From positions 5,575,451 through 5,637,885 of the forward strand of contig NC_068981.1 of assembly GCF_001194135.2 (NCBI RefSeq): a stretch of DNA of 62,435 bases, written 5' to 3'. Positions within the stretch are counted from its first letter, which is position 1; each line of letters begins with the position of its first letter. Made by a program: the position numbers and the translations under genes. Under the pieces are notes generated by a model that worked only from the letters and a program-made list of their open reading frames with translations, did not search any database and was not told where the DNA came from. The DNA comes from Octopus bimaculoides (taxonomy: Eukaryota). Below are positions 17,332 to 60,757 of the stretch, piece after piece.

Positions 17332-17949
17332 TATATACAAAGTATAGGGGTTTAGTTCACAGGCTTTCTAAACGATTACGTACGCTAAGTAAGCGCTGTA
17401 ATGGATTACTAGGGCTCCAAAGTTTTAGCCAAGACAGTAGTTATGGAACCATTGCACATTTCCGATGCTGTGGATATATAATAGTTAAAGAGGACTTTGA
17501 CATATTTTCTGCTATTTTGTTCTAAACCAGTTGTATTTAATGAGCTTTCTGCAGTCAGGGCAGACGAGGATCTTAGTTCTTTTTTTCCTTTCATTTTTCA
17601 CATTCCATTTTTTGCACCAACCTTTATCGTGTTTTTTTTCTTCTTATTTTCTTATTATCCAGCATACTTGTTTTTAAGAAATATATATAAAGCATAAACA
17701 GATCCTGAAATATTACTTTAAGTTATCATCATCATTATCATTTAACGTCCGTTGTCCACGCTGGCATGGGTTGGATGGTTTGACATCTGAGTTCAAAGAA
17801 TAATTTTATAATTCCTTGGACTTGTCCTTTTATCAAATAATTTTCAGACCACAATTTATTATTTTCAGACCAACTGTCATTCCATAAACAAAAGATACTT
17901 CTTCATCCTCGCATGTAAACTCTATGATTTATACAAAACAACACAATTG

Positions 17950-18132
17950 ATGTTCTATATTTAAGAGATGAGGAATTATGTACATTATTTACATTCGACG
18001 GATATTTGTCCTCATCTTGTTTGTTGTTATCACAACACAAGACACCTGATGAAGGCTGGAGGGTATATCAGCCGAAGCATTGTGTTAACAACAAACAAGA
18101 TGAGGACAAATATCTGTCAAATGTAAATAATG
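17950..18132. mobile_element. HHR-SINE foldback, locus 1 (degenerate HHR)
   Basis: Inverted arms; TSD AACACAATTG at 17940-17949 and 18133-18142; core mutated (GAAGC, ATT). Confidence 0.85.
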
Positions 18133-18649
18133 AACACAATTGCTGTCTATCGCAAGCGATATTTTTTTCCTTTTCAACTAAAAATAGCTCAGTTGCCGGT
18201 GGGTTTATGTTAATGTGTTACAAAGGGTTTGACTGGGTCAACTTTTAAACATACAAAAATTATTTTTGTATTATTCTTGTCGTAAAATACTGAAAATTAT
18301 TCAAACTTACGCAGATATGGAAATATCATGGAAATGACTCAGCAATTTTTCAAAGGACAGGTGCTCAATAATGAAATAAAATGGTGTCTATTAATGCTAC
18401 ACAGTGTTACTTGTTTGGCCGAAGCCAGTTAAAATTTAAAAGAATTTTATTTCTGTAAATTAATATTCAGTTATTATTTTATTAACACACCCACCATACA
18501 CACACACAAACTGTAAAGGAACACAAATGAGGTTTAAAAATTGATGACACCTGTAACGGCCGAGTCACCCATTTGTAACGGTTGAAGTTTTTATGAGTTT
18601 GTACGGTTGAAATTAAATTGTAAACAATAACATAAATCATTCGAACGAG

Positions 18650-18928
18650 ATCGTTGCCAGTGCCGCTGGACAGGCTCCTGTGCAGGTGGCACGTAAAAAA
18701 CACCATTTGAGCGTGGCCGTTGCCAGTACCGTGTGACTGGCCCTCGTGCTGGTGACACGTAAAAAGCACCCACTACACTCTCGGAGTGGTTGGCGTTAAG
18801 AAGGGCATCCAGCTGTAGAAACTCTGCCAGATCAGATTGGAGCCTGGTGTCGCCTCCTGGTCCACCAGACCTCAGTCAAATCGTCCAACCCATGCTAGCA
18901 TGGAAAGCGGACGTTAAACGACGATGAA
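18650..18928 (+). mobile_element. young RTE 3'-end derived repeat
   Basis: GTTGGCGTTAAGAAGGGCATCCAGC...CCCATGCTAGCATGGAAAGCGGACGTTAAACGACGATGA. Confidence 0.85.
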
Positions 18929-20800: not shown

Positions 20801-23039
20801 AGGAGTTCATTCTTCACCTGCTTTTGTTAGCAACCGTCTCCCACTTCCTAGTGAGAATGTAGTCAATTTGGTTTGTGTGGCCACCAGATTAATAAGCAAT
20901 CAGCTGATTTCACACATAAATACACACACACACACACACTTCTTTCAGTTTTCATCTATCAAGTCCACTTACAAGGCTTAACTTAGGCAATTAAGACAAA
21001 CACTGACCATATTCATAACTGTCTGTAGTATTTCGGAAGAATTATAGGAAATCAATTAAGGCAGAAACAATTAATCTTGAGTTTGAATCTTCATCATCAA
21101 TGAATTGTAATTTTATTTTATTTTATTTTTTGTTCCTTTCAGGTGCAGAAGATGGGTACAAACCAATGGAATTCCCTGCAGAAACTTTCCCCTATCCCAG
21201 CTCTTCCTGTCAGGCCAACATATTTATGGCTGCCACCATCTAAAATCGTTGAGATAAAAGGTAGGTTAGGAGAGATTATGGAGTTGAGGAGATGTGCACT
21301 TGCATGGATCAGATGGAGTCGCGGAGGTAGATTTTCTGTAACCTGATGGTCTTCTTGTTGCCAACCTTCATCTATTCCCCATGAGACAATAATCGAATTT
21401 TATCGACAAAATCAATGATTTGTTGTGCTCTATCTAACCCAAGGGGCCTGGCATTTGTCATTTTGGGGCCAGGTAGCCACCATCTAAACAAGTAATACTC
21501 AACTTATTCCAGTGGTTTGAACATCAGGGGGGGGGGGGACTCTATTTACTTTGTGCGGGAAGGAGGCCAGCTTATAACTTCTTTGGAACTCCAAAAACTG
21601 AAGTGCAGTTTTATTTTGGGGAAGCATTTCTCTAAGTGGCAAACACCAATGAAATGTAGAATTGTGTTTGAAGGGGAAAAAGCCCTCTCAGAAACACATT
21701 GATTTAGATGAATGGTTCCCAGCCAGGGTCCGTATCAGATCTTTTGGGGTCTACACAATAGTAAATTGGGGATCCTTGGTAGTATTTGAAGGGTCCATGA
21801 AAAAACATTTTTGATTTTGATGTATTTATTGCAAAAGACAGCTTGATTTCTTTCTCTGATGTTTTACAGAATTTAAGGTTTCCGGCCACTGAAACATGTT
21901 CTCTCAGAGAGTGTTATTATTGCAAAGCCATACAAGTGAATATGGGGGGCATCACGAAATAGGAATTTTGAAAGAAGTATCTATAAATCTCTATGAGGGC
22001 CCACCAGGATAAAATACTACTTGAAGAAGTCCATAGGTAAAACCATAGGTTGAGAACCACTAACTATGAATATATATATATATATATATATATACGAATA
22101 ATAAATGAGTATATGCATATATACGTACATGTATGTGCATATCTACATCTACCTGTATATATAGGTGCATATCTGGGTACAGGACGTTGCAAAAAAAACG
22201 TAAACAAAAAAATAATAACCAGAGTACAGAAAACACACAGGCCACATAGAGAACATTTCCTTCATCAGCTGCCCCCATTCTAACATTGGCGTTTCGAAGA
22301 GTTAGGGCAAGACGCATCGTTAAAATGGCTCTTCCCACGGACCACAAATTAAATTTGTATCATGGAGGAATGTAGTGGCGGACAAAAAAACAAAACAGGA
22401 AAACAAACGGAAAAGGCTATATGGCCAGACGTGAAAAATTATGTGTATATTGAACGCTGTGAAGCAACAAACTGGAAGGAAGCGGGACGAAGTATGTTCG
22501 TATGCGTGCTTGGTGATAGCCAAGGAAGAAAAGAATTAGTAGCTGGACACATGTGACCAGCAAGGGGTAAGGAGAAAGAGTGGTAGAGGNNNNNNNNNNN
22601 NNNNNNNNNNNNNNNNNNNNNNNNNNNNNNNNNNNNNNNNNNNNNNNNNNNTATATATATATATATATAATATATCGTCGTCATTTAACGTCCGCTTTCC
22701 ATGCTAGCATGGGTTGGACGATTTGACTGAGGACTGGTGAAACCAGATGGCTACACCAGGCTCATATATATATATATATATAGAATGAAAAATAAATTAA
22801 TCAGAGATGTCATCTGCATGAAAATAATAATGAAGGTAGTAATAACATATTTAATACAAGAGAATAGTTAGGTAAGAGATCAAAGTTTGAACTAGGGGTT
22901 AGGCTTTGTGGTGATGGGGAGGGTAGAGATTAAACAGGATCAGTATTGAAGATGAAGGCTTATTGCAAGTGTTGATCATGGTTTAATGTTGGGTTTAGCA
23001 GTGAAAGACAGGGATGAGGGCTAAGGTTAGTGTTTTGTG

Positions 23040-23832
23040 CGATGATGCCTCATCCTCTACTAGAATAGGAGGGAAAAGGTAGGTCCAGGAAGACCTGGGA
23101 TGAGGTGGTGAGGCACGACCTTCGAACATTGGGCCTCACCGAGGCGATGACTTCTGACCGAGACCTTTGGAAATATGCTGTGCGTGAGAAGGCTCGGAAA
23201 GCCAAGTGAGACCTAAATCTAAGGCCTCAACCAGTCCATTTATGCGTACCTTCCTTCATTGGACACTAAACTCCACTTGTGAAGACATGTTGAGGTAAGT
23301 GAAATTGAAATCGAGATAAATTGGACGCAAAACTCCACTTGCGAAGACCGGTTGAGGCAACTGAAATCAAAATCGAAATCGAGTTAAATTCGACAACTGG
23401 CACCCATGCCAACGTCGTCTCCTTCATTAGACACGAAACTCAGCTTGTGAAGACGTATTGGGGAAAGCGAAATCGTGAAGGCACCTGTGCCCAGCGTCGC
23501 CTTTCTGGCACTTGTGCCCGCGGCATGTATAAGGACTTTCGAGAGAGATCGTTGCCAGTGCCCCTGGACTGGCTCTTGTGCGGGTGGCACATAAAATACA
23601 CCATTTTGAGCGTGGCCATTGCCAGTACTGCCTGACTGGCCTTTGTGCCGGTGGCACGTAAAAGCACCCACTACACTCTCAGAGTGGTTGGCGTTAGGAA
23701 GGGCATCCAGCTGTAGAAACTCTGCCAAATCAGATTGGAGCTTGGTGTAGCCATCTGGTTTCACCAGTCCTCAGTCAAATCGTCCAACCCATGCTAGCAT
23801 GGAAAGCGGACGTTAAACGACGACGACGACGA
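23040..23832 (+). mobile_element. RTE LINE 3' end (ORF2 C-terminus, 3' UTR, (GAC)n tail)
   Basis: RGKGRSRKTWDEVVRHDLRTLGL-type frame followed by the repeat-family 3' UTR. Confidence 0.85.
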
Positions 23833-24204
23833 GCATTTTTAATGCTAATTAACAGTAATAATAATTATCATTGTATGACGAGAAAAAGACAGGAGTTAAC
23901 GGCAAATATTCAAATACTGGGACAAGGGAGGTAACTCCGTTTTCACTGTTTTGTTACGATACAAACGTTGAGTGTGAGGTTTCTCATATTTACTGAAATG
24001 AAATTTTAAAAATTAGTTGAGGTTTTTTGGGGTTTTGTTTAGGTTTATAAATAAAACTTTCATAAAAGCAGAATAATGCCGCCTTCCTGTGGTTGAAGCA
24101 TGGCAAGTTGGAGAGATTTACTGAGTCCTGTGGCTTTGAGGTTTATCTGGAATAAAATTTAGCCATGGACTTGAATAAAGGTTTGAGGAAGGTGACACTT
24201 TTGT

Positions 24205-26235: not shown

Positions 26236-26477
26236 ATAAAGTGATAGTATGTTGTCAACTTAATATTCCATAAAAGGAAGAATGCTACTGTTATTTAGCC
26301 CTAGGAAACACTGTTGGTTTTGCTGGGTGGAGGTGTTTATCTCCCCTTTGAAAACATAAGGACAGAGGAAATGTGTCAAGTCCAGCAGGAAACGGTGTTT
26401 CCTAGGGCTAAATAACAGTAGCATTCTTCCCTTTTATGGGACTGTCACATTAAGTTGACAACATACTATCACTTTAT
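26236..26477. mobile_element. MITE-like hairpin (~75-bp arms)
   Basis: ATAAAGTGATAGTATGTTGTCAACTTAAT...GGAAGAATGCTACTGTTATTTAGCCCTAGGAAACAC and its reverse complement. Confidence 0.8.
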
Positions 26478-27192
26478 TCAACTGGTGTTTAGGAAAAGTG
26501 AAATTGTGACCACGTGGCTGACCAGACTATTGGATAATGTTATACATCATCAGTCACAATGAATTTCACAAATGATGCCACCCCACTGGCTGGTCGAGTA
26601 GGCCAACATTTCCCCGAAGGTTAGTCTGTTGCAGGGTGACACATTTACAGCTGAATGGACTGGAGCAAAGTGAAGTGTTTTGCTGAAGAACACAAGACAC
26701 TACTGGTCTAGCAATTAATTTAAATTACCTCCTCAATGTCTTCAGCTCAGATTTCGATACAGGTAGTTGAAGTTTTCTCTTCTTGGTAACACATACTGAA
26801 GATGTTGAGGTAATTTAATTTAAATTAATTTATTTATTTTGCCAGTACAGAAACTGGTCCATGTGAGTCCTTATACTTAAATGTATATTAAGAGATTTTA
26901 TTAACCTAATCTGCTTTCGGTTGATTTCTATAGTTACCATCAGTGTATTTTTGGTGATTTAAATAAGAGTTTTGACTGTTATTTCCAGCAGGTAGACATA
27001 CTTAGTACGTCCTTTGATTAATTTTAATCCTGCAGCTATTAAATGCTTTTCTTGGGCCTGTGATAGCTTATATTATAAATTCTGTTATTATCATTTTTTT
27101 AAAGTCATTTCAGATGATAACAAAATTAATATCTTAGCAAATTAATTTCCAAGGATTTATATTTTTTCTCGCGAATTGTTTGTCCCTGTATG

Positions 27193-27231
<39 letters not shown>

Positions 27232-27361
27232 GGACAAACAATTCGCGAGAAAAAATATAAATTCATGAATTTGAAGATGCTGGTTCTCTTATGTGATGTT
27301 CAATGTCGCATGGTCGAATGTACATAGGTTTATTAGCATTTTCAAATTTATAATCTAGAAT

Positions 27362-27422: not shown

Positions 27423-27706
27423 TAACTAACGAAAGGTTTGTTATTTCTCTTCTTTTACCTATGTGAGTCATGAATATCGCTATCTGTTGGAGATATATTG
27501 TAGTAGTAGAATTAGTAGTTTAACTGCTATTTCTAAATTTTCGGTATGTTGGTGAAGCAACTTTTGCTGATCCCTAAATTATGTTTTATAATTATAAAAG
27601 TTTTACTGATAATGGTTTTTTGCATACCGAACTACTTGGCAGAATTATTAATTATTACTTTATTAATTAATTGACAATTCCATGCCCTATATCTATAATG
27701 ATATAT

Positions 27707-28192
27707 CATCATCATCATCGTTTAACGTCCGCTTTCCATGCTAGCATGGGTTGGACGATTTGACTGAGGACTGGTGAAACCGGATGGCAACACCAGGCTC
27801 CAGTCTAATTTGGCAGAGTTTCTACAGCTGGATGCCCTTCCTAACGCCAACCACTCAGAGAGTGTAGTGGGTGCTTTTACGTGTCACCCGCACGAAAACG
27901 GCCACGCTCGAAATGGTGTCTTTTATGTGCCACCCGCACAAGCCAGTCCAGGGGCACTGGCAACGATCTTGCTCGAAAATCCTACGGGAGCCAGTCAGGC
28001 GGTACTGGCAACGGCCACGCTCAAAATGGTGCATCTCATGTGCCACCTGCACAAGAACCAGTCCATGGGCACTGGCAACGATCTTACTTGGCTTGCAAGG
28101 TCTTCTCACGCACAGCACATTTCCAAAGGTCTCGGTCAGTAGTCATCGCCTCGGTGAGGCCCAATGTAGTCATCGCCTCGGTGAGGCCCAAT
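27707..28192 (-). mobile_element. young RTE 3'-end derived element with internal repeats and a 27-bp tandem duplication (28139-28192)
   Basis: Near-identical to 42251-42640. Confidence 0.85.
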
Positions 28193-28297: not shown

Positions 28298-28598
28298 ATT
28301 GAAAATTCCTATGAAAATGACCGTTAAACAAAGGGAAATTACTGTGTAATTGACCGTTATTAAGACAAAAGAGCTATTAGAATGACCACTAAGTAAGGGA
28401 AGGATGAGTATATACATATAGGTGCATGTACTGATTGGTGCGCTTACGCGAATACTATGGACTTTTTTACTCCCTCCCCTTACTTTACGGTCATTCTAAT
28501 AGCTCTATTGTCTTAATAACGGTCAACCACACAGTAATTTCCCTTTGTTTAACAGTCATTTTCCTAGGAATTTTCAATGGCCGGATAACTGAAGAGAT

Positions 28599-28865
28599 AA
28601 TACAGTTCTATATTTAAGAGATGAGGAATTATTTACATTATTTACATTATTTACATTTGACGGATATTCGTCTTCATCTTGTTTGTTGTTAACACAACGT
28701 TTCGGGTGATATTCCCTCCAGCCTTCGATAGGAATGAGAACCCAGGTTCGAAATTTCCCCAAGACACCTGACGAAGGCTGGAGGGTATATCAGCCGAAAC
28801 GTTGTGTTAACAACAAACAAGATGAGGACGAATATCCGTCAAATGTAGATAATGTAAATAATGTA
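28599..28865. mobile_element. HHR-SINE foldback, locus 2
   Basis: TSD AACTGAAGAGAT at 28587-28598 and 28866-28877. Confidence 0.9.
28763..28808 (+). ncRNA. intact minimal type I HHR of the HHR-SINE
   Basis: GACAC-CTGACGA-A-GGCTG/CAGCC-GAAAC-GTT-GTGTT. Confidence 0.8.
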
Positions 28866-29018
28866 AACTGAAGAGATGTTTGGCGTGGGTTCCCACCCCG
28901 GCATCCAAAACTCGGAGTTGTATCATGGCTACCGAATAAGTGTCACATATTTTTACAGATAAATTCCTCTATTTACATAATATCGAGGTCTCTTTCTTTC
29001 TTTTGTTGTCTTTTCTAT

Positions 29019-29062: not shown

Positions 29063-29556
29063 CTGACAGGCCTCTTTCAGTTTTCATCTACCAAATCCAC
29101 TCACATGGCTTTGGTCAGCCTGTGGCTGTAGAAGACACTTTCTCAAGTTACCTTGCAGTGGGATTGAACCTGTGATCTTCTTAATTACACACCCACTCCT
29201 GCATATTTTTATTGTTATAAACTCACAACTTGTAATCTTATGTGATATCATATAAGTTCATAAAAAGAATCATAATTTCAGATTTAGGCCAGCAATTTTG
29301 AGGGGAGGGGCATAGTCGATTACATCACTCCCAAAGTTCTCAACTGGAATTTATTTCATCAAGTCCAAAACGATGAAAGGCAAAGTCGGCCTTTCTGGAA
29401 TTTGAACTTGGAATATAAATAGCTGGAAGAAAGGTTGCTTAGCATTTTATCCAGCATTAATAATTCTGCCAGATTGCTGCTTTCTGGATCTGGAAAATTC
29501 ACTGCAACACAAATTCATTGTATGGACAGTGATAAAGTGTATTACAGTAGCATTTT

Positions 29557-29937
29557 GTTTACATTATTTACATTTGACTGATATTTGTCCTCAACTTGTT
29601 TGTTAACACAACGTTTCGGCTGATATACCCTCCAGCCTTCATCAGGTGTTTTGGGGAAATTTCGAACCTGGGTTCTCAGTCCTAAGGTGTTTTCTGATGT
29701 CATTATTATTATTATTATTATTATTCAGGTCACTGCCTGGAATCGAACTCAGACCTGAATAATAATATCGAAAAATACCTTAAGAATGAGAACCCAGGTT
29801 TGAAATTTCCCCAAGATACCTGATGAAGGCTGGAGGCTATATCAGCCGAAATGTTGTGTTAACAACAAACAAGATGAGAACAAATATCCGTCAAATGTAA
29901 ATAATGTAAATAATTCCTCATCTCTTAAATATAGAAC
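29557..29937. mobile_element. HHR-SINE foldback, locus 3
   Basis: TSD AGCATTTT at 29549-29556 and 29938-29945; HHR on both arms (29605-29650 minus, 29815-29860 plus). Confidence 0.9.
29605..29650 (-). ncRNA. intact minimal type I HHR of the HHR-SINE
   Basis: AACAC-CTGATGA-A-GGCTG/CAGCC-GAAAC-GTT-GTGTT with a perfect 5-bp stem I. Confidence 0.8.
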
Positions 29938-31306
29938 AGCATTTTTTTAAATAAAATAAAAATGATTGATAAAATTTCTTTATAAAAGCATTTAATAGGC
30001 AAGTCTTTATTCAATGTCAAACATTAAGAAAACGTGATGAAGCTATTTAAAATGAAATGTCTTATGGCGAATTTTAGGCAAAAACGTTCACAGCAAAATT
30101 TCCTACAACCACTGCCATAATAATTCTTTCTGTAATAGGTACAAGGCTAGAAATTTTGAGGTGTCTAGTTGATTAGATTAAGCCCAGTATTCAACTGGTA
30201 CTTTATCAACCCTGAAAGAATGAAAGGTAAAGTTGGCTTCAATGGGATTTGAGATTGGAAGAGACATTTTGTCCAACACCCAAATTGTATTAGTGCCAGT
30301 GGCACATGGAAAGCACTCGATAAGCAGGGCAAGGCGGTTGGCATTAAGAATGGCAACCTGCCAAAGCTTACACTGGTACAGGAGGCCACCCTGTGGCACA
30401 AAGGATTCTCCCAAACCATTCAACCCTTACTTGTAAGCTTTGGCAGGTACTGTTGTCTGTTTTTGCCTGGTTTTTATGGCTTGCAGCCCTTCCTAATGCC
30501 AACCACTTTACAGAGTGTGCTGGGTGCTTTTTATATCACACCATCACCTGTTTAGTTATAGATTATTGGAGTTCATAACATCTGATACAACCATTGCATA
30601 TAGATCCTGGTAATCCCTTGTACGTCAGTTTTACTGCTGGAATAATGTCAGCCTCCACCCACCCCGTCATCATCATTTAACGTCTGCCTTCCATGCTGGT
30701 ATGGGTGGGATGATTTGACAGGAGCTGGTCAAGAAGAAGCCTACACTAGACTTCTCTGTTTTGGCAGGATTTTTACAACTGGATGCCCTTCCAAACGCCA
30801 ACCACTCAGTAGAGTGGACTTAGTGCTTTTTATGTGGCACCTGCACTGACAGGGTCACCAAGTATCTTGCATGACACAAAAAACATCTTTTGAGAGGAGG
30901 AGGGGGCATTGGAGGAGATCTTATTCATATTGCTTTGAATTAATCCTGCATTATCTTGTAGCATCAAAAATTTGTTGATGTATGTTTATTAGAATGACAT
31001 TGTCCGGTAGGTGTGAAAGGCTGAATCTGGCCAGTTTGAACATAAAACAGGTAGAGTACATTGGCCCAACATAGCGGGTTTAAATGCTAAACGAAAAATA
31101 TACAAACATCAAAGCCATCATCATTTGTGGCAAGACACAAAGCAAACCCAATGTGAATTTGTCTGATTCCTTAAAAGCAACTAAAATTTTTGATTTTCAG
31201 TTTAACCAAAAATACTCCCTTAAAGAAATACGATTTCTTGGTCACATTGTGAAGAAATAGAACATTGATTGGCTCTGATGCAAAAGGCCATGCTAGGAAT
31301 ATCAGT

Positions 31307-31765
31307 CATCATCATCGTTGTTTAACATCTGCTTTCTATGCTAGCATGCGTTGGACGATTTGACTGAGGACTGGTGAACCGGATGGCTACACCAGGCTCC
31401 AATCTGATCTGGCAAAGTTTCTACAGCTGGATGCCCTTCCTAATGCCAACCACTCCAAGAGTGTAGTGGGTGCTTTTACGTGCCACTGGCACGAGGGCCA
31501 GTCAGGTGGTTCTGGCAATGACCACGCTCAAAATGGTGTATTTTACGTGCCACCTGCACAGGAGCCAGTCCAGCAGCACTGGCAACGACCTCGCTCGAAT
31601 GTTTCTTCACGTGCCAGTAAGGCGATGCTGGTAACGATCACGCTCAAATGGTGCTATTTATGTGCCACTGGCACGGAAGCCAGACAGCTGCTCTGGCAAC
31701 GATCACGCTCGGATGGTGCTCTTAGCGCTCCACTGGCACAGGTGAGTAAGGTGATGCTGGTAACG
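31307..31765 (-). mobile_element. RTE 3'-end derived repeat with internal tandem subunits
   Basis: Same family as 27707 and 42251. Confidence 0.8.
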
Positions 31766-32045
31766 ATCAGATTAAGAGAACATATTCAGAATGAGATAAT
31801 TAGGGAATGGAGTGGAGTAAACAATGTGATCGCAGAGTACCGAAAGCCTAAGTTCTGCTGAGTCAGACATGATGCAAGGTTCACATACAACAGGTGGAGC
31901 CATGCAGTTGCCAAATGGTATCCAAGAAATCAGAAAAGGCCTTCATAATGATCAGATGATGATTTGGTCAAACAATTTGGATCCAGATGGAAAAGAATGG
32001 CACAATTAAGACAGAATGGGAAGCGCATTGTAATCAGTGGTGTGT
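31745..32045 (+). mobile_element. second RTE-type LINE C-terminal fragment
   Basis: IRLREHIQNEIIREWSGV...RWSHAVAKWYPRNQKRP...DDLVKQFGSRWKRMAQ motif. Confidence 0.7.
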
Positions 32046-35813: not shown

Positions 35814-36115
35814 CAATCCCTTCAGTGAAATATCTTTGCTTGATATGGAGAAAAGATGAAGGTGGAAATTCCATACTGTATGCCCCATGAAAGCTATGGA
35901 TACATAAGAGGTGCAGGAAAAATAAACACCAAGAACACACAGGAAATAGATTTTCCCTAATTCCTAGAGATATCCTTAGAGGTAGTAGATAGTTTCTGTT
36001 ACCTAGGTGACCAAATTAACTATGGAGGAGGATGCTCTGAAATCATAGTTGCTCAAATAAAAACCAGCTGGGCAAAGTTCAGAGAACTATTGTCCTTTGT
36101 TGGTAACAAAATGTT

Positions 36116-42250: not shown

Positions 42251-42640
42251 CATCATCATCATCATCATCGTCGTTTCACGTCCGCTTTCCATGCTAGCAT
42301 GGGTTGGACGATTTGACTGAGGACTGGTGAAACCGGATGGCAACACCAGGCTCCAGTCTGATTTGGCAGAGTTTCTACAGCTGGATGCCCTTCCTAACGC
42401 CAACCACTCAGAGAGTGTAGTGGGTGCTTTTACGTGTCACCCGCACGAAAACGGCCACGCTCGAAATGGTGTCTTTTATGTGCCACCCGCACAAGCCAGT
42501 CCAGGGGCACTGGCAACGATCTCACACGAAAATTCTACGGGAGCCAGTCAGGCGGTACTGGCAACGGCCACGCTCAAAATGGTGCATCTCATGTGCCACC
42601 CGCACAAGAACCAGTCCAGGGGCACTGGCAACGATCTTAC
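42251..42640 (-). mobile_element. young RTE 3'-end derived element
   Basis: Near-identical to 27707-28087. Confidence 0.85.
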
Positions 42641-42817
42641 ATAGATATACACATGCATATATATGGTGGGGGAGTATTTCTTTATGTTTCAGCCCTGAGA
42701 CAGTGGCCATGCTGGGGCACCGCCATTGAAGACATGGGAAGGCTTGAAAGAAATGAAGCCAGCGTGCTCCACTGGATGGGTGATGTCAGTGTGCAGCTAC
42801 GACAGAGTGTAAGTGAT

Positions 42818-43002
42818 ACAGTTCGATATTTGAGAGATGAGGAATTATGTACATTATTTACATTATTTACATTTGATGGATATTTGTCCTCATCTTGTTT
42901 AACACAATGTTTTGGCTGATTACCCTCCAGCCTTCATATGGTATAGTGGTTAAGAGTGCGGGCTTCTAACCCCAAGATTCTGAGTTTGATACCAAGCAGT
43001 GA

Positions 43003-43040
<38 letters not shown>

Positions 43041-43183
43041 TCAAAAAATACCTTAGGAATGAGAACACAGGTTTGAAATTTCCCAAAGACACCTGATGAA
43101 GGCTGGAGGGTATATCAGCTGAAACGTTGTGTTAACAACAAACAAGATGAGGACAAATATCCATCAAATGTAAATAATGTAGA
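42818..43183. mobile_element. HHR-SINE foldback, locus 5
   Basis: TSD GTAAGTGAT at 42809-42817 and 43184-43192; plus-strand HHR 43088-43133 nearly intact. Confidence 0.9.
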
Positions 43184-44554
43184 GTAAGTGATTTGAGAGG
43201 ATATAAGAGACATCAGATGTGTGCAAAACAGAAGACTGTGCTGGTATGGCCATGTTACCATCATCATTGTTTTACGTCCGCTTTCCATGCTGGCATGGGT
43301 TGGATGGTTTGACTGAGGTCTGGAGAGCCAGCGGCTGCACCAGGTTGCAATCTAATCTGGCAATGTTTCTACAGTTGGATGCCCTTCCTAATGTCAACCA
43401 CTCCGAGAGTGTAGTGAGTGCTTTTTACATGTCACTGGCACAAGAGCCAGTCAGGCGGACCTGGCACCAACCACGTTCAGACCGTGCTTTTTATGTGCCA
43501 CCAGCACGGGAGCCAGTCTTGGGGTACTGGCCATAGCTATGATATTGGTTTAACTTGACTCAAGAGGTCTTCTCAAGCATATCATATCGCCTGACGGATC
43601 AGGGGTACTCTTAACTGGGTCGGACATGCGTGGCTGCAATCTCACTTTTGTTGCTGGGTCTTCTCAATCACAGCATATCTCCAAAGGTTATGGTGTGAAT
43701 GAAGGCAGTCACATCAAGAGGTGTCAATCTCTAATTGTAGAGGGAACACGTGAAAGGGACAGATCCAGGAAGACATGGGACAAAGTGGTGAAAAAGGATT
43801 TTTAGTTGTTGGGACTCACAGAGGAGATGAAAGGGCAGCAAGGTTCTTGATAGTTTGATGTGCTAAGTAAAAGCATGGTTGTCCTTGTAAACAGGTTGTT
43901 CCCTACATCCATCTCCCTTGTGGGGTTGTGGGTGCTGGTTCCACATAAATGCACTCTTTGTACCCTCAGTAAAATGGTTAGCATTAAGGAAGGGTATCCA
44001 GCTGTAAAAACCTTGTCAAAACTGACCCAGTGTCACGTAAAAAGCACTCAGTCCACTCTGTGGAGTGGTTGGTGTTAGAAGGGCATCCAGCCATAAAACC
44101 GATGCCAAAACAGTCACAGAAGTCTGATGCAGTCTTCTAGCCTGACTGGCTCCTGTCAAACTGTCCAACCCATGCCAGCATGGAAAGTGGACGTTAAATG
44201 ATGATGATGATATATATATATGTATATATATGTGAGTGTGTAATAGTCACATGTGTATATAAACAAACTTACATTTGTATTTTAGAAGCACTGAATGTCT
44301 ATCATACAATACAGACCAGAAAATGATATTTTCAAATGCAGTATTGGTGTTAAAACAGCAGAAAAATTGGGCAATATTACCCTCACAAAGTGAAAAAAGT
44401 TGTCAACAAACACCCATGAGAGTTGAACCCACATCCCCTAAAACACCAGCTGAGTGTGCTACCATTAAGCTAAACTGGTGGTTCTTAAGCTATGGGACGC
44501 GACCCCAAATGGAGTCGCAATTGAATTTCAGTTTAAATGTTCTTTTCCACTCTA

Positions 44555-44975: not shown

Positions 44976-47770
44976 TGTTGCCTTATTTCAGTTTGTGTTA
45001 TTTCTGAAATGGCATTTCATGTTCTTTGGTCATTTAGCACTACATACATATCTGAAACAACTTTTCCAGCTTTAACCCTGATTAAAACCAAATATTGTTC
45101 AACGCTGAAAAACATAGAAGACATTTTACGTCCAGCAGTGTTGAATATTAATTACTCCAAGGTTTGATTTGTTCTGCAGCAAAAAAACCAGGAACATCCA
45201 TTGCAATAGTTTTTATTTTGGTTTATTTTTGAACTTGAAACAAGTTCTAAAACTATTTTTATTTTGACAAATATTCTTTTACTCTTTTACTTGTTTCAGT
45301 CATTTGACTGCAGCCGTGCTAGAGCACTGCCTTTAATCGAGCAAATCGACCCCAGGACTTATTCTATCAGTCTCTTTTGCCGAACGGCTAAGTTACGGGG
45401 ACGTAAACACACCAACATCGGTTGTCGAGTAATGTTGGGGGACAAACATATACACACACATGCATATATATGACGGGCTTCTTTCAGTTTCTGTCTACCA
45501 AATCCACTCACAAGGCCTTGGTCAGCCCAAGGCTATAGTAGAAGACACTTGCCCAAGGTGCCACGCTATTTACCACACAGCCACACCTGCGCTTATATAA
45601 CTATCTTTTTTAAATGTATACTGTTCAGCAAAAAAAAAAAACCAAAAAGATTTATGTATTTATTTGTATGTTTTATTTCATATTTAATACCAGGGGTCGC
45701 AAAAAATCTCATGAGGAAAAATGGGGTCATGAATGGAAAAAGCTAATGAAGCACTGAGCTAAACTTCATTTCCACCAATTTTAAATGGTAAATAGCTAAT
45801 TGAAATGTAACCACCACATGTGTATAGAAACAAACTTACAGTTGTTTTTTTACAAGTGCTGAATGAGTATCGTACGATACAGACAAGAAAGCAGTTAATT
45901 TCGAACACAGTATCGCTGTTAAAACAGTAGAAAAATTAGATTGAACAAGAAATCAAAAGTTTTCTCTTGTGACTTCCTTAATTTCAGTTGATTGGGAAGA
46001 AGGATTAGAAAGAACAAATATTAAATTACTTCTACTAAATGACTATTTACGGACTATTTATTTAATACAATGCTACTAATGAAATCCAATAGGACTATTG
46101 AAAAATATTTTTGCTGCTGCTTCTGTTAATGTATGAGATCTGCATTGTACAGCATTTCTGAAGGGCAAGTTACCATTTTCTGATTACAATGCTCACAGGA
46201 CAAGTGAATACACACCCATGTTTAATCAGCAGAAGTTACCAAATGACTTGAAGGTGAAGTGTTTGGCGGAGGTAAAAGACATGAACCACACCCCGCTTTC
46301 GGTTATTTTTTTCCTACAGAAACCAACCTTTTTGATTGCGGAGATTCCGAATCTCCAAAAAAAAAAAAATGAATCACCATTTCAAAGTTTTTAGGGTTTT
46401 CAAAATCTTCAATTTCTATGTACGCTATAACCGGAAAGTCTGACAAGCTAGAAATAACAGCTAAACCAAAGATCCACTTTCTAAATATGAATTACCGAAA
46501 AAGAAAAAAAATTTTTTAATGTCATTTTGCNNNNNNNNNNNNNNNNNNNNNNNNNNNNNNNNNNNNNNNNNNNNNNNNNNNNNNNNNNNNNNNNNNNNNN
46601 NNNNNNNNNNNNNNNNNNNNNNNNNNNNNNNNNNNNNNNNNNNNNNNNNNNNNNNNNNNNNNNNNNNNNNNNNNNNNNNNNCTAGATTTTACACACCTCT
46701 CTTAATTCCAAAAGACCCTCAACCAAACATGTTCACTTTCTGTCACAGATACGCTGGCAGAGTGGAGTGGTTGGCGTTAGGAAGGGCACCCAGCTGGAGA
46801 AACTTTGCCAGATCAGATTGGAGCCTGGTGCAGCCTTCTGGCTTGCCAGTCCTCAGTCAAACTGTCCAGCCCATGCTAGCATGGAAAGCGGACGTTAAAC
46901 GGTGATGATGATGATGATGATATGTATTTATTTGTTTCAGTCATTTGACTGCAGCCATGCTGGAGCACTACCTTTAGTTGAGCAAATCGACCCCAGGACT
47001 TATTCTTTGTAAGCCTAGTACTTATTCTATCAGTCTCTTTTGCCGAACTGCTAATTTACAGGGATGTAAACAGACCAGCATCAGTTGTCAAGCGATGGTG
47101 GAGGATTAAATACATACACACACACATACATGTCACACAAGTGGCACCCATACTGGTGGCATGTAAAAGCACCCATTACAGTCTCAGAGTGGTTGCCGTT
47201 AGGAAGGGCATCCAACCGTAGAAACCATGCCAAATCAGACTGGAGTCTGGTATAGCATACCAGCCCAGTCAAACTGTCCAACCCATGCCAGCATGGACAA
47301 TGGATGTTAAATGATGATGATGATATATATACAACTGGCTTCTTTCAGTTTCCGTCTACCAAACCCACTCATAAGGCTTTGGTCGCCTAGAGGCTATAGT
47401 AGAAAACACTTGCCCAAGGTGCCATGCAGTGGGACTGAACCCGGAACCATGTGGTTGGTAAGCAAGCTCCTAACCACTAAGCTGCACGCCTTCACTAATT
47501 CGTATTTAACTGAAGAAGAAGAACAAGTGTCATTGCTGTCATCACTACAAGAAGCATAAAAGAGAAGAGTNNNNNNNNNNNNNNNNNGATCAACTGAAAT
47601 ACTAGAAGACATTTTCTTGGCCACACCTTGTTATGCTAATCCAGTCCACTTGATATAATCTCAAGAGACACAATGTAAAGCAATAGATCTAGAAAACTGT
47701 TTATGTGGGACATTTGACTGACAAAAGAAATGTTAAAATCATGAATGTTTTTAATCAGAGAACAATTATT

Positions 47771-48078
47771 TACATTATTTACATTTGGCGGATGTTTGTC
47801 CTCATCTTGTTTGTTGTTAACACAACATTTCGGCTGATATACTCTCCAGCCTTCATCAGGTGTCTTGCAGAAATTTCGAACCTGGGTTCTCATTCCTAAG
47901 GTATTTTTCGATGTTATTATTATTATTATTCAGATCACTGCTTGGAATCAAACTTGGAATCTTGGGGTTAGTAGCCGGTGTTCTTAACCACTACGCCATA
48001 TGCCCATGGGTATATGGCGTAGTGGTTAAAAGCATGGGCTACTAACCTCAAAATTCCGAGTTCGATTCCAGACAGTGA

Positions 48079-48132
<54 letters not shown>

Positions 48133-48329
48133 TAACAATAATAATAATAATAATAATATTGAAAAATACCTTAGGAATGAGAACCCAGGTTCGAAATTTC
48201 CCCAAGACACATGATGAAGGCTGAAGAGTATATCAGCCAAAACAATTGTGTTAACAACAAACAAGATGAGGACAAATATCTGTCAAATGTAAATGATGTA
48301 CATAATTATTTATCTCTTAAATATAGAAC
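47771..48329. mobile_element. HHR-SINE foldback, locus 6, with both heads complete
   Basis: TSD AACAATTATT at 47761-47770 and 48330-48339; arms meet at the palindrome CCCATGGG (48003-48010). Confidence 0.92.
48008..48080 (+). promoter_or_regulatory. tRNA-like SINE head with Pol III A and B boxes
   Basis: GGGTATA-TGGCGTAGTGG (A box)...GAGTTCGATTCC (B box). Confidence 0.8.
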
Positions 48330-48530
48330 AACAATTATTAATTTAGAATTAATTAAGATAACACCCAAATATTCAGATGTCAAAATGTAACAAAGGAAAT
48401 ATATTCAAACTATATTCTCTGTCGTTCTTTCAATGAATATTGGTTTTCATGGCTGTGTGGTAAGATGCTAGCCCTAAATGTGATAATTCATTTCGGGTGG
48501 AAAGATTTAAAATGAATATCGAATACTTAC

Positions 48531-49549: not shown

Positions 49550-49715
49550 AAGTGTGGCTGTGTGGTCAAGAAGCTTGTTTTCCAATAATATGGTCTTGGG
49601 TTCAGTCCCACCATACAGTACCTTCAACAAGTGTCTTCTATTACTGCCTTGGGTTTACCAAAACCGTGGAAGTGAATTTGGTAGATGGAAACTGAACGAA
49701 GCCGGTCGTCCCTCT
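49550..49715 (+). mobile_element. SINE S1
   Basis: As for the other S1 copies. Confidence 0.75.
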
Positions 49716-49717
49716 CT

Positions 49718-49774
<57 letters not shown>

Positions 49775-50129
49775 TATATATATACATACACACACACACA
49801 TATAATGAAGGTGCATGGCTTAGTGGTTAAGGTGTTGCATTCATGATTGCAAGGTCATGGTTTCGATTCCCAGACTGAGAGTTGTGTAATGCTTTTGAGC
49901 AAAGCACTTCATTTCTTGTTACTCTGACATCATTTTGTCACCTGACACGACACATTTGTGTACCTGTAAAGGTAATGGCTATTTGATGGAGAGAGTGAGT
50001 TTATGTGAATACAGACATTTGATCATCACTATAAATAAATCATCTGTGTGGTTGTTTGGCAAGAAATTGCCAAACCCTCGTGCGTCGTCTAACAACAGGA
50101 GAGTCCATGATATATAAATATATAATATA

Positions 50130-54235: not shown

Positions 54236-55562
54236 TTTTCAATGGTATGTAATTGTAGTCAGTCACATGTTCAGATGAGACCTCATTGACTCTGATATAG
54301 GGAAAAGTGAATAAAACATTCACAGCTGCCCAGCTGAATAAAACATTCAGTATGTGCAATTGGTTGAGTATTTAATTATAATAGCCATCTATGTATCATA
54401 CCCAATGTATGCAAACTGTTGACAGGCCAGTTACTGCAGTATTTATCCTGGGATAACATGTCTTATCGACTTGCTGAGTTAAAAACAGAATAATTCACCT
54501 CAGCAGTGTCCAATAAGAGCACCAGAAGCATTTTCATCTATTTATAATAATGCCTTGAATATAGCACAACAATAAAAGATGTCTCTAAATATTGCAGTAA
54601 CTGGCCAATTGACATTAAGTATGATATGCACATACGTGATGGGCTTCTTTCAGTTTCTATTGACGAAATCCACTGACAAGGCTTTGGTATAGAAGAAAAC
54701 ACTAGCCCAAGGCAGCATGCAGTGGGACCGAACCAAAAGCCATGTGGTTGGGAAGCAAACTTTTTAACCATACAGCTACACTTATGCTTTATTCTCAGTC
54801 TGAGATTCCAGGAACAATTTGGAAAAAAAAAACAACAACATAAAAACAGATATGCGATAGAAAAGATAAGCAAAAAAAAAAAAAAGACTAGAATGATATT
54901 GTTTTGTTTTTTGTGTTGAACATGTGAACTCTTTTATTTGTATGATGCAGAAAGGAGAGAGAGAAAGAGTCTGAGAGGCAGAACAAAGAAGTGGCCAGCA
55001 ATGCTGGAAGAGAACAAAACATACCAAAAGAAAAAAAGAAAAAAAAAGCAACAACATGAACCTTGGTGAAACTGATTCAGTCAATGACAAGAATGGTACC
55101 ATAAAACAGTAAACACTGAAATATGGATGTCTGGAATCATTAAATTATATAAAAAACATTTAACAATAACACACACACACACACACACTAGAATATATGG
55201 GGGATCGTTATTATTATAGAATGTTTTTGTCCAACCCATGCCAGCATAGAAAAGGGAAGCTAAACCATTCTGTCATCTCAAAAGTGAATGACATTTGAAA
55301 TTTCTTCATCTAAAGATGCATATATTCTATCTTTTCTACTCTAGGCACAAGGTCCGAAATTTTTTGGGAGGTGGCCAGTCGATTAGATCTACCCCAGTAC
55401 ACAACTGGTACTTAATTTATCGACCCCAAAAGGATAAAAGGCAAACTCAGAACATAAATACAGATGAAATACCACTAAGCATTTTGCCCAGCGTGCTAAT
55501 GTTTCTGCCAGCTCCCCCACCCCCGCCTTATGCATATATTCTATCTACCTACCTATCTACTG

Positions 55563-55601
<39 letters not shown>

Positions 55602-56964: not shown

Positions 56965-57230
56965 GTCCTTGTGTGGGTGGCACATAAAAGACACCATTTC
57001 GAACGTGACCGTTGCCAGTATCGCCTGACTGGCCTTCGTGCAGGTGACACGTAAAAGCACCTACTACACTCTCTGAGTGGTTGGCGTTAGGAAGGGCATC
57101 CAGCTGTAGAAACTCTGCCAAATTTAGATTGGAGTATGGTGTAGCCACCCGGTTTCACCAGTCCTCAGTCAAGTCGTCCAACCCATGCTAGCATGGAAAG
57201 CGGACGTTAAACGACGATGATGATGATGAT
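56965..57230 (+). mobile_element. young RTE 3'-end derived repeat
   Basis: Family consensus with (GAT)n tail. Confidence 0.85.
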
Positions 57231-58137
57231 GTATGAATTTAGAAAAAAACAAAAAAAAAAAAAAGCAAAAACGCATAGCTCATTAAAGGAAAGCTGTATT
57301 TGAAAACAAATTGGTCCAAATAATCTTGAGAATCCGTTAATCATACTTATCCAATAAACCCATTGTTAGCATCAATGGCTGCTCAATATAGGGGTGGAAA
57401 CACTGATATGCTTGAATCAGATGATCGTTATCAATTTTGGACATAGTGCTGGTTATGGTGGACTTGAGAGACTGTACGGTGTTATGGGGGGGGGTGTTAA
57501 TTGACCTCTCCTCTTGACTATGCCCCATACGTAACAGTCCAGCACACTGAAGTGAGCTAGGACACTATGTGTCTGGGAGCACATGATCCTGGAGATTGGT
57601 AGACATCTATGCTTGGGCTCTCCTAGCTTCAAGAGATGGTGCAGAATCTTGTTGGAAGATGTACGGTTATTGTTTTAACGTCTACTTTTCCATACCAAAC
57701 ATGGGTCAGACAACATTCACTGAAGCAGGTTTTCTATGGTCAGGTGCCTTTCCAAATTGCCAACAATTACCCGTTACCAAGCAAGTTAATATTTTCCTTG
57801 AGTCTAGGCATGTTTTCTAGATTTCAAACAGGCATTACTAGCTGGACGATAGTGAAGTTTCTGTGCAATTAGAATATAATGCCAAGACAAGGTCACACAC
57901 ACACACAATGGGCTTCTTTCCAGTTTCCATCTACTAAATTCACTCACAAATCTTTGGTTGGCCCAAGGCTATGGTGGTAGACACTTATGCAATGTGATGT
58001 GTAGTGGGACTACTGTCAGGTTGCTCTAAGATGGTTGGGTCATTGGTGGCTAAACTGGTAACCTCACCAAGCTTGCTTGGTGAAGAGGGTGATGTATTGG
58101 ACAGCCTGTGGGAGAAAAAGTATTTAAAAAAAAACCC

Positions 58138-58492
58138 GCTCTATATTTAAGAGAAGAGGAATTATGTACATTATTTACATTTGACGGATATTTGTCCTCA
58201 TCTTGTTTGTTGTTAGCACAACGTTTCGGCTGATATACCCTCCAGCCTTCATCAGGTGTCTTGGAGAAATTTTTGAACCTGGATTCTCATTCCTAAGGTA
58301 TTTTTCAATGTTATTATTATTATCATTATTATTATTCAGGCCACTGCTTTGAATCGAACTCGGAATCTTGGGGTTAATAGCCCGCGCTCTTAACCACTAC
58401 GCCATATGACCTGATGCAGGCTGGAGGGTAAATCAGCTGAAACGTTAACAACAAACAAGATGAGGACAAATATCCATCAAATGTAAATAATA
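58138..58492. mobile_element. HHR-SINE foldback, locus 7
   Basis: TSD T(A)9CCC at 58125-58137 and T(A)10CCC at 58493-58506; minus-strand HHR core intact at 58215-58260; left arm carries the head. Confidence 0.88.
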
Positions 58493-60757
58493 TAAAAAAA
58501 AAACCCATCAAAGATTGGAGGAAGTCAAGAGAGTCAACAGTCATCCAATAAAGTGTGAAAGCATGTGGCATAGTGGTTAGGGTGTTGCACCCATGATCAC
58601 ATGATCATGGTTTCAATTTCTAGACCGAGCTGTATGTTGTGCTCTTGAGCAAGACCTTTCATTTCCTGTTAATCCAGTCCACTCAGCTGTAGATGGGTCA
58701 CCTTGAGACAGATTGGTGTACAAGGGTGAGAGGGTGGCCCAGNNNNNNNNNNNNNNNNNNNNNNNNNNNNNNNNNNNNNNNNNNNNNNNNNNNNNNNNNN
58801 NNNNNNNNNNNNNNNNNNNNNNNNNNNNNNNNNNNNNNNNNNNNNNNNNNNNNNNNNNNNNNNNNNNNNNNNNNNNNNNNNNNNNNNNNNNNNNNNNNNN
58901 NNNNNNNNNNNNNNNNNNNNNNNNNNNNNNNNNNNNNNNNNNNNNNNNNNNNNNNNNNNNNNNNNNNNNNNNNNNNNNNNNNNNNNNNNNNNNNNATATA
59001 TATATTATGGGTTTTAAGCTAATATTTTGGTGGAGGTGCAGGGCTTAGTGGTGAGGGTACTGGACTTAGGATTGTAAGATTGTGGTCTGTAGTACAAATG
59101 TCTTGTTTTCAAAAGTTCTGAATTAAAATCTTCTACAAACCTTAGTTACAATTTATGTTCCTAACACTAGCTTAATGATAACTAAGTTATTTTACTAAAT
59201 TCTTTGTTATATTTAAAATTAATTGAAAGAAACACAGAGCATCTCAACAGAAATACGGATATGAAAGGGTTAAACTATATTCCATCACAGATTGTAGAAA
59301 ATTCACAAAGGCAATGACCAAGACCTTTGGTATTATGTTGTGCTTGAGAAGACCCATCAAACTGAGCAAAATGGCAGTCGTGGCAGATACCAGTGTCATG
59401 CAAATTGGCACCTGTGCTCGTGGTACAAAAACACAGCCCGGTGTCATGCCAGTGGCACATAAAAGCACCCATTACACCCTCAGAATGGTTGGTGTTAGGA
59501 AGGACATCCAGCCATAGAAACCTTGCCAAAACAGACATGGTGTGGATCTTGGCCTTGCCAGCTTCTGCCAAACTATCCAACCCATGCCAGCATGGAAAAT
59601 GGATGTTAAATGGTAATAATTGTGGAAGCTATTGAGAATTTTAGGGTGAAATTTGTTCTAAAGTAAAAACTATCAATCTGTGTGTTTGAGAGAGAGGGGG
59701 GGGGGGGGAATGACATTTTGAAATTAGTCTTCAAAATGTTACTATGGTAACCTTTTTGAAGATACAGTTGCACCAAGATCTCTCAATTTATGGAATCTAC
59801 AGAAAGATTTACAACAGAAAAGTTTAGCAGTTTTTTGTCTTCTCTGCCTTTATCAGTTGTCTAATTTAAAGCAACTCATCAAATAAACAGAGTATAATTT
59901 ATTGAGTAAACACACATATACACAATGTAGTTTATCAAAAGCCACACATTTTCATATACATTTCAAATATTCCCCATGGAAAAGAAAAATGAAACCCAAC
60001 ACATGTTTTAGAGAGAGAAATGTATTTTAAAACAGCTGCAGTGTGTATATGTAAGTTTTATCTTATAAACACTCTTAGCACATACACAAACATACAGAGC
60101 AAATATATACAAAACAACCAGTCCACCACCAAAAATTCTCCTCATTCTGTTGGGTTGAAAACTTTATGATTGGCACCATCAACAATGTCACAATAAAAGT
60201 TAAATTTGGTGAAATGGCATGGCGCTACATAAACGCATCTGTACAGTACCATGCAAAAGTGACGTCACACAAAAGCACCTGTGCAGCATCATGTAAAAGT
60301 GCCCTTGTGGTGTCACGGCAAAGCACTCATATGATGTCACTTAAAAGTGCCTGTGATGTGCCACGTAAAAGCACCCAGCACACTCTGTAAAGTGGTTGGC
60401 GTTAGGAAGGGCATCCAGCCGTAGAAACTATGCCAAAACAGACTGGAGTCTGGTGCAGCTCCCCAGCGTGCCAGCTCTGGTCACACTGTTCAAGCCATGC
60501 CAGCATGGACGATGGATATTAAATGATGATGATGAAATGAAGGTGGGTAGATGTGTACTGCATACATGAAATAAGATGGTGGGAAGACCCAGTCAGATTC
60601 TTCAAAGTACAGACTCTAGGTAGGTAACAGTGCTAGAGCAGGCATATTTTTGCAGAGAAATGGCTGAAGCAATTGTAGTCAAAGGCGGTGAGAAAATAAT
60701 TCAGTGTTGGCAGACAACATGGCAACAATAGTGATCTCTGTATAAGCACCACATTAA

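Follow-up and report, generated by a model that had tools for sequence, protein, structure and literature searches.

The 62,435-nt stretch of Octopus bimaculoides DNA analysed here (contig NC_068981.1, positions 5,575,451 to 5,637,885; hereafter the window) has a G+C content of 38% and eight runs of N. It contains an open reading frame (ORF; 38174-38860, minus strand) with 100% identity to the O. bimaculoides UDP-galactose translocator, representing an exon of that gene. In the introns of the gene (loci 5-7) and downstream of it (loci 1-4) lie seven loci of a short interspersed element (SINE)-like family, in which a promoter head with RNA polymerase III (Pol III) boxes is followed by a hammerhead ribozyme motif. 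An earlier note on this DNA had counted the same seven loci, and a BLAST search of the window with the unit at 48008-48329 returned these and no others. That unit of approximately 320 bp is also present as the note described it, with head, (AAT)n tract, hammerhead and tail and without poly(A). Its tail needs revision from approximately 90 nt to a 3' module of 77 nt, and the loci had been taken for single units, whereas each is a head-to-head inverted pair of two copies (7/7). For comparison we used a chromosome-scale O. bimaculoides record (L001, in which positions 90468-56207 correspond, reversed and with the gaps retained, to 28174-62435 of the window), the orthologous region of Argonauta hians (L002) and the gapless orthologous region of O. 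sinensis (L003). The coordinates of all features are listed in Table 1.

Alignment of the 14 arms in the window yielded a 267-nt consensus, consisting of a head (1-74), the (AAT)n tract, a linker (97-144), the hammerhead (145-190) and the 3' module (191-267), which ends in CTCTTAAATATAGAAC. None of the arms has a poly(A) or simple-repeat 3' end. Divergence from the consensus is 5.6% overall, with 24% at CpG sites and 4.1% elsewhere, and the family covers approximately 4% of the window. The (AAT)n tract ranges from 2 to approximately 27 repeats. Since its length differs both among copies and between orthologues of two species (48083-48157 versus approximately L003:91240-91300), it behaves as an active microsatellite.

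The two arms of a pair differ at both ends. For loci 1 to 7, the 5' truncation points lie at consensus positions 183/142, 155/111, 48/~71, ~43/8, ~153/4, 1/1 and 1/151, the arms measure 83-322 nt, and the internal junction is different at every locus. The 3' ends are of two kinds, and all seven loci combine one long with one short end, never two long or two short ones. Long ends reach consensus 265-267 plus 0-7 nt, the extra nucleotides sometimes having the form TGTATT, while short ends lie approximately 30 nt before them, at ~236-241 in the window loci and at 229-233 in two arms of L001. A 9-bp stem (AGAUGAGGA/UCCUCAUCU) encloses the short 3' end, and because the 3' strand of this stem sits within the tail, the complete stem-loop is retained in the long arms only. 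At all seven loci it is the whole pair that is bracketed by a target-site duplication (TSD) of 8-12 bp, which is exact apart from one mismatch in the 12-bp duplication of locus 5. When left flanks were compared with the right flanks of other loci, the longest shared word was 7 nt, and none of 42 comparisons reached 8. Read with the long arm as the plus strand, the TSD has a 3'-terminal T at every locus and TT at five of the seven.

Such scars are known from Penelope-like elements (PLEs), whose insertions are heavily 5'-truncated, are often preceded by an inverted 5'-truncated copy and carry a tail of 30-40 bp at one end (Craig et al., PMC8557442). Purified PLE protein nicks and extends both target strands, and its reverse transcriptase (RT) begins at two adjacent internal sites, the tail being the intervening sequence, a signature unique to PLEs (Frangieh et al., PMC11167929). 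The preferred cut of the PLE endonuclease is 5'-ATT-3' (PMC11167929). All seven insertions in the window fit this integration signature, with truncation, inverted copy, one-end tail and variable TSDs. This supports PLE-type mobilisation, which the earlier note had proposed, with evidence that the note did not have.

The A-rich or simple-repeat 3' end of a tRNA-derived SINE that is mobilised by a LINE (long interspersed element) is absent, the ends following the PLE pattern instead. An ordinary SINE mobilised by a LINE (RTE, CR1 or similar), with inversions arising through twin priming and the hammerhead as a fortuitous feature or a passenger, would be in keeping with the RTE-type LINE fragments and classical CORE-type SINEs of the same region, and LINE endonucleases could produce TSDs of 8-12 bp. 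Twin priming, however, affects a minority of insertions and inverts a segment that comes from elsewhere, further upstream, in the template, whereas here 7/7 loci have the 3' module in both arms, with two discrete 3' ends approximately 30 nt apart. Together with the lack of poly(A) or simple-repeat ends in every arm, and with a hammerhead that agrees with a PLE-specific architecture in four separate features (see below), this renders LINE mobilisation highly improbable. The long terminal inverted repeats with a TSD at every locus, and the 44-196 bp hairpin that they form, would also suit a miniature inverted-repeat transposable element (MITE) or foldback DNA transposon, its arms being terminal inverted repeats moved by a transposase. 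In a cut-and-paste element, the ends, the internal sequence and the TSD length are all expected to be constant. Because the junction varies from copy to copy in arms of 83-322 nt, the termini are unequal and the TSD length ranges from 8 to 12 bp, we exclude a MITE or foldback element for practical purposes.

Snap-back copying of one complementary DNA (cDNA) was also considered and is ruled out, because the arms of a pair agree in neither their 5' nor their 3' ends. A signal of a shared template was not detected: the value for arms within a locus was 0.096 versus 0.092 between loci (permutation p = 0.70), and private shared variants are few. Two independent tail-only inverted fragments of 44 nt (L001:32001-32044 and L003:54360-54403) both end at consensus 224, and may be abortive cDNAs covering only the tail. 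Four arms, those starting at 28728(-), 42935(-), 58412(+) and L001:32045, have lost their 5' part up to a point in the hammerhead that lies in helix II or immediately 5' of it (consensus 151-171). These truncations may mark a pause or a joining hotspot, although four arms are too few for statistics. Each pair, if transcribed through, folds into a hairpin of 44-196 bp (z = -16 to -37 versus shuffles). Three pairs are intronic in the translocator gene, locus 6 lying 178 nt from an exon, and the hairpins are possible double-stranded RNA (dsRNA) substrates. Because the pairs form inverted repeats, they also produced spurious matches to the MIR841, MIR837 and MIR7533 models.

The O. sinensis region retains pairs 3, 4 and 7 with identical junctions and the same assignment of long and short ends, at 91-93% identity, similar to that of the flanks. 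Since this orthologous sequence is gapless and has the same junctions, an assembly artefact can be dismissed, and the inverted pairs are older than the divergence of O. bimaculoides and O. sinensis. Of locus 5, the O. sinensis region has a part, and an eighth locus, found in L001, is present there with a later deletion. In the window itself, the flagged gaps (22590-22651, 46531-46681 and 47571-47587) all fall between SINE loci, the closest being separated by 173 nt from the TSD copy on the left of locus 6, and all seven loci, both TSD copies included, are within uninterrupted sequence. No copies of the family were found in the orthologous region of Argonauta hians.

The consensus hammerhead reads GACAC CUGAUGA A GGCUGG AGGGUAUA UCAGCC GAAAC GUU-GUGUU (the hyphen marks the predicted cut) and has every invariant core position. 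Helix I comprises 5 bp (GACAC/GUGUU) and is open, helix II comprises 6 bp (GGCUGG/UCAGCC) and has an unpaired A on its 5' side, and helix III is absent, the palindrome AACGUU standing in its place. The sequence string quoted in the earlier note holds for this family consensus, but not for the copy at 48008-48329, which reads ATGATGA, AAAAC and AATT. The consensus has the core CUGANGA...GAAA, the A15.1-U16.1 pair and the non-G cleavage site that define membership of the minimal hammerhead ribozymes (min-HHRs). A descriptor composed of the core, helix I and helix II of at least 4 bp each and a minimal helix III matched five times in the window, always inside family copies, compared with 0.01 matches per dinucleotide shuffle (100 shuffles). 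Over the three helices, 93.8% of cells are paired among 16 copies from two species.

In metazoan PLEs, the min-HHRs have a helix I of 5 bp, an unpaired nucleotide 5' of helix II and no helix III; dual motifs on opposite strands, 100-700 bp apart, occur in PLEs, and thousands of dispersed animal min-HHRs have been ascribed to truncated PLEs (Cervera and de la Pena, PMC4209133). Judged by its sequence, the octopus hammerhead matches this published type feature by feature, opposite-strand pairing included, and the agreement in four features upholds the earlier assignment of a hammerhead with a loop-less helix III to PLEs. The AUG inside CUGAUGA opens a frame of 25 codons, with the cut site approximately 33 nt and the long 3' end approximately 115 nt downstream. 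In PAc, a lizard PLE, the ORF starts at the same place of the hammerhead, the cut lies 26 nt downstream and RT initiation lies 111-118 nt into the ORF (PMC11167929). We regard this likeness in distances as a parallel and not as proof of homology.

The full-length arms carry both sides of the predicted cleavage site, and none of the arms from O. bimaculoides (14 in the window and two in L001, 16 in all) starts at G186, the predicted 3' cleavage product. The template was therefore uncleaved RNA, as was also the case for the lizard PLE in vitro (PMC11167929). These observations bear on metazoan non-LTR (long terminal repeat) retrozymes, described in the literature as SINE-like, for which an origin as non-autonomous derivatives of PLEs has been suggested, the latest such proposal being a 2026 preprint. 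If the octopus family belonged to them, tandem hammerhead repeats would give rise to circular RNA and rolling-circle reverse transcription. A type I hammerhead, probably dependent on dimers, is common to both, the proposed derivation from PLEs would fit, and the eighth locus includes a partial tandem in head-to-tail order. It is tandem arrays and circular RNAs that define retrozymes, whereas the seven window loci are inverted pairs, no arm begins at G186, and the full-length arms run linearly from the head across the cleavage site, so that a retrozyme is a very unlikely explanation.

Within the head, the A box (TGGCGTAGTGG) agrees with the consensus at 11/11 positions and the B box (AGTTCGATTCC) at 10/11, and they are spaced so that T8 and G53 fall into the canonical tRNA register. 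Four independent full-length arms share the 5' end GGG(C/T)ATATGG, the equivalent of tRNA position +1, and the sense-strand consensus is free of TTTT. These promoter features suggest that the element would be transcribed by Pol III. Because ARAGORN and Rfam reject the head, we infer its tRNA derivation from the promoter boxes. The tRNA-like head of the earlier note thus stands as regards boxes in tRNA register, but not as regards recognition as a tRNA by either program.

We consider it likely that the family is a non-autonomous Octopus retroposon, in which a tRNA-gene-type Pol III head has been fused to a PLE module that comprises the hammerhead and the sites of RT initiation. It is probably an abundant octopus SINE that was spread by an unusual copying machinery. 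This interpretation builds on the anatomy of the element, its insertion signature and TSDs, and the fact that pairs are retained in two species; a PLE protein would be the enzyme, and the hammerhead a putative active ribozyme. Pol III would start at the G equivalent to tRNA +1 (GGGCAUAUGG 5' end) and would read through an element that has no TTTT in its sense strand. A PLE protein with RT and GIY-YIG domains, acting in trans, would recognise the 3' module, its endonuclease would nick the two target strands 8-12 bp apart, each after a T, and each DNA end would prime reverse transcription at one of two internal sites approximately 30 nt apart. Two cDNAs with different 5' truncations would then be joined head to head, so that a single TSD would enclose an inverted pair whose arms carry a long and a short tail, respectively. 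The hammerhead would be active only as a dimer or together with protein, and AACGUU could form helix III between two molecules; it was probably retained as part of the module used by the PLE protein. Candidate partners exist, because octopus genomes carry recently active PLEs, with 31 PLE families in O. vulgaris (PMC13282606).

Several results weigh against this interpretation. No ORF for a PLE RT or GIY-YIG protein was found in the window, L001 and L003 (approximately 215 kb of octopus DNA, or 200 kb without gaps), where the only RT in the ORF listing is an RTE-like fragment. The 25-codon peptide that starts at the hammerhead AUG, extended to 43 amino acids, had no relative in the protein collection, and scanning metagenomes with a 21-mer from the 3' module yielded 0 matches. 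The strict rule of one long and one short end is not accounted for by the PLE protein in vitro, which uses the two RT start sites without preference for a strand (PMC11167929). A clean empty site was not recovered in O. sinensis, one flank of loci 2 and 6 being unalignable. Concerning the hammerhead, compensatory changes number 0 among the 16 copies from two species, and the Rfam hammerhead models gave no match at the gathering threshold or at E<=10 in the window or in pieces of 301 and 86 nt, and thus no model-based support. A single young family that lacks helix III is expected to give both outcomes. The earlier note had set excess conservation of the core across copies as a criterion; none was found, non-CpG divergence being 3.9% in the hammerhead and 4.2% in the rest of the element. 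Core conservation is the wrong criterion here, because dispersed copies decay neutrally. The core mutations are mostly CpG decay, in CCGAAACGUU, and in terms of sequence the informative point is the intact motif in the reconstructed source. As for the head, ARAGORN found no tRNA in the window, the loci or the consensus head at 80% thresholds, and the Rfam tRNA model had no match at E<=10, the 86-nt piece included.

A head that has no tRNA fold and fails both programs could also be a captured fragment of a SINE or tRNA pseudogene. The element would then be a non-autonomous PLE derivative, transcribed by read-through or by RNA polymerase II, and not a true SINE. The intronic position of three loci in a transcribed gene would allow for this, and butterflies and Chlamydomonas have short non-autonomous Penelope elements that lack a Pol III head. 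The near-perfect boxes (A box 11/11, B box 10/11) in exact tRNA register, the four independent full-length arms that end at the tRNA +1 equivalent and the absence of TTTT from the sense-strand consensus argue against a captured fragment, which we regard as unlikely.

The interpretation as a Pol III-headed retroposon with a PLE module has partial precedents. SMalpha and Sjalpha of Schistosoma (Ferbeyre et al. 1998, Laha et al. 2000, as summarised in PMC6765202 and PMC8490949) are SINE-like retroposons with a Pol III promoter and a hammerhead. As summarised there, they resemble the octopus family in being non-coding, dispersed and approximately 330 bp long, with a type I hammerhead downstream of a Pol III-type promoter. 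However, the SMalpha hammerhead is counted as 'canonical' and not as a min-HHR (PMC4209133), whereas the octopus motif is minimal and lacks helix III, and SMalpha often occurs in tandem or satellite arrays, the comparison being one of published descriptions. The summarising sources mention no inverted pair, tail signature or PLE partner for SMalpha. With the PLEs Penelope, Poseidon and Neptune the octopus family shares the hammerhead, the inverted 5'-truncated partner, the one-end tail, variable TSDs, T-rich nicks and an AUG in CUGAUGA (PMC4209133, PMC8557442, PMC11167929). It differs from them in its length of approximately 270 nt, in lacking an RT/GIY-YIG ORF and in having a Pol III-type head in place of the promoter of the PLE pseudo-LTR (pLTR). 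A tandem arrangement of the pLTR kind is seen at one of eight octopus loci, the partial tandem of the eighth.

Like retrozymes and short non-autonomous PLEs (Chlamys MRC1, Heliconius), which are thought to borrow PLE machinery, the octopus element is non-coding, but no tRNA-type head with A and B boxes has been reported for either group. LINE-dependent tRNA-derived SINEs, such as the octopus CORE-SINEs OR1 and OR2, and the Pol III-headed LTR elements of the TRIMp3 group, Helenus, Ajax and Cassandra (PMC10886601), likewise join a Pol III head from a small-RNA gene to a module of an autonomous element, whereas the module and insertion scars of the octopus family are of PLE type. A 2024 survey of small-RNA-derived mobile elements mentions no PLE-dependent kind. 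Our full-text search of the literature found no paper that joins a tRNA-type A/B-box head to a PLE module, and none in which SINEs of octopus are connected with hammerheads or PLEs; the 1994 paper on OK, OR1 and OR2, SINEs of octopus, was outside the search. The sequence strings of hammerhead, 3' module and head were likewise absent from the texts, with Repbase, Dfam and SINEBase outside the search. The OK SINE, the octopus SINE of non-CORE type, may be the hammerhead family. The undescribed class envisaged in the earlier note thus holds in so far as the union of PLE module and tRNA-type head was not found in the literature, but elements combining Pol III promoters with hammerheads, and non-autonomous PLEs, have precedents.

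SINEs are defined by their dependence on LINEs. Elements with Pol III heads that depend on LTR retrotransposons were recognised recently (PMC10886601), and a Pol III-headed element with the full Penelope-type signature would add a third dependency. More tentatively, and with considerable doubt, we suggest that this could be the first documented partnership of a Pol III SINE with a PLE, that the hammerhead family is perhaps one of those behind the SINE burst of the octopus lineage, and that every insertion would be born as a dsRNA-forming inverted repeat, because PLE integration makes two cDNAs. The divergence peak of octopus SINEs has been reported at a Jukes-Cantor distance of 0.065, to which the 5.6% of the hammerhead family is close. 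SINEs rank among the main repeat classes of octopus genomes, and in O. vulgaris they make up 11.6% of the genome and are mostly 'unclassified' (PMC13282606); the identity of the enzyme that spreads them would change how the octopus SINE expansion is read. If the suggestion is correct, host transcripts acquire a long hairpin with each insertion, and octopus genomes have a built-in, abundant source of dsRNA in their introns, a potential substrate for ADAR or small-RNA pathways. The rule of one long and one short end would then represent an in vivo constraint on PLE integration that was unseen in vitro. The element would furthermore give PLE biology a short, abundant reporter, with thousands of integrations from which RT starts, strand coupling and target choice could be read.

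Table 1. Coordinates of the hammerhead SINE family in the window, in L001 (O. bimaculoides) and in L003 (O. sinensis). Arrows give consensus positions from left to right.
Feature	Position	Strand	Remarks
Head with Pol III-type boxes	48008-48081	+	A box TGGCGTAGTGG 48015-48025; B box AGTTCGATTCC 48059-48069
Internal (AAT)n microsatellite	48083-48157	+	length differs among copies and species
Linker	48158-48205	+	locus 6 long-tail arm
Minimal type I hammerhead, decayed copy	48206-48252	+	C3A, G12A, one insertion
3' module, 77 nt	48253-48329	+	AC-rich stretch, then stem AGAUGAGGA/UCCUCAUCU; ends CTCTTAAATATAGAAC
Locus 1 long-tail arm	17952-18036	-	consensus 267->183; two extra nt (AT) between TSD and arm
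Locus 1 short-tail arm	18038-18132	+	consensus 142->~236; hammerhead GAAG instead of GAAA
Locus 1 TSD	17940-17949 and 18133-18142		AACACAATTG
Locus 2 long-tail arm	28605-28728	-	consensus 267->155; 5'-truncated within hammerhead
Locus 2 tail extension	28599-28604		TGTATT (reverse complement)
Locus 2 short-tail arm	28729-28866	+	consensus 111->~241; hammerhead 28763-28808 intact
Locus 2 TSD	28588-28598 and 28867-28877		ACTGAAGAGAT
Locus 3 short-tail arm	29557-29753	-	consensus ~241->48; hammerhead 29605-29650 intact
Locus 3 long-tail arm	29754-29937	+	consensus ~71->267; hammerhead 29815-29860 passes descriptor
Locus 3 TSD	29549-29556 and 29938-29945		AGCATTTT
Locus 4 long-tail arm	36123-36337	-	consensus 267->~43; extension CCTTACA at 36116-36122
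Locus 4 short-tail arm	36338-36549	+	consensus 8->~238; hammerhead damaged by deletion
Locus 4 TSD	36108-36115 and 36550-36557		AAAATGTT
Locus 5 long-tail arm	42821-42935	-	consensus 267->~153; 5'-truncated within hammerhead
Locus 5 short-tail arm	42936-43180	+	consensus 4->238; hammerhead 43088-43133 intact
Locus 5 TSD	42806-42817 and 43181-43192		AG(T/A)GTAAGTGAT; 12 bp, one mismatch
Locus 6 short-tail arm	47771-48007	-	5' end full length; hammerhead 47819-47864 passes descriptor
Locus 6 long-tail arm	48008-48329	+	'complete unit' of the earlier note; consensus 1->267, (AAT)n expanded; hammerhead core decayed
Locus 6 TSD	47761-47770 and 48330-48339		AACAATTATT
Locus 7 long-tail arm	58138-58411	-	consensus 267->1, full length
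Locus 7 short-tail arm	58412-58494	+	consensus 151->~237; 5'-truncated within hammerhead
Locus 7 TSD	58126-58137 and 58495-58506		AAAAAAAAACCC
Locus 8	L001:32001-32393		inverted tail-only fragment, 5'-truncated direct copy, 8 nt filler, full-length direct copy
Locus 3, O. sinensis orthologue	L003:91085-91515
Locus 4, O. sinensis orthologue	L003:86108-86584
Locus 7, O. sinensis orthologue	L003:62057-62403

The window contains further repeats. A second tRNA-headed SINE family, at 2430-2520(+), 40450-40870(-), 47150-47510(-), 49555-49730(+) and 54400-54800(-), combines A and B boxes with a CORE-like body (ggcaagtgtcttctactatagcctcgggccgaccaaagcc...), without hammerhead and without inverted pairing; it is probably an octopus CORE-SINE of the OR1/OR2 type. 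Two further A/B-box heads, at 49816-49870(+) and 44419-44472(-), belong to other SINE-like repeats. A fragment of an RTE-type LINE reverse transcriptase, broken by an assembly gap, lies at L001:21951-23268(-). A repeat of approximately 400 bp occurs at 23384-23764(-), 27706-28142(+), 31301-31861(+) and 42255-42919(+), and at 53909(+) of L001, with 80-86% identity; it carries a pseudo-ORF (MKPDGNTRLQSNLAEFLQLDALPNANHSE...), and the insertion of SINE locus 5 lies at the margin of one of its copies. Near-perfect hairpins at 27164-27253 and 26248-26467, one of them centred on (TA)n, had sub-threshold scores with miRNA covariance models, and are probably small inverted-repeat elements and not miRNA genes.

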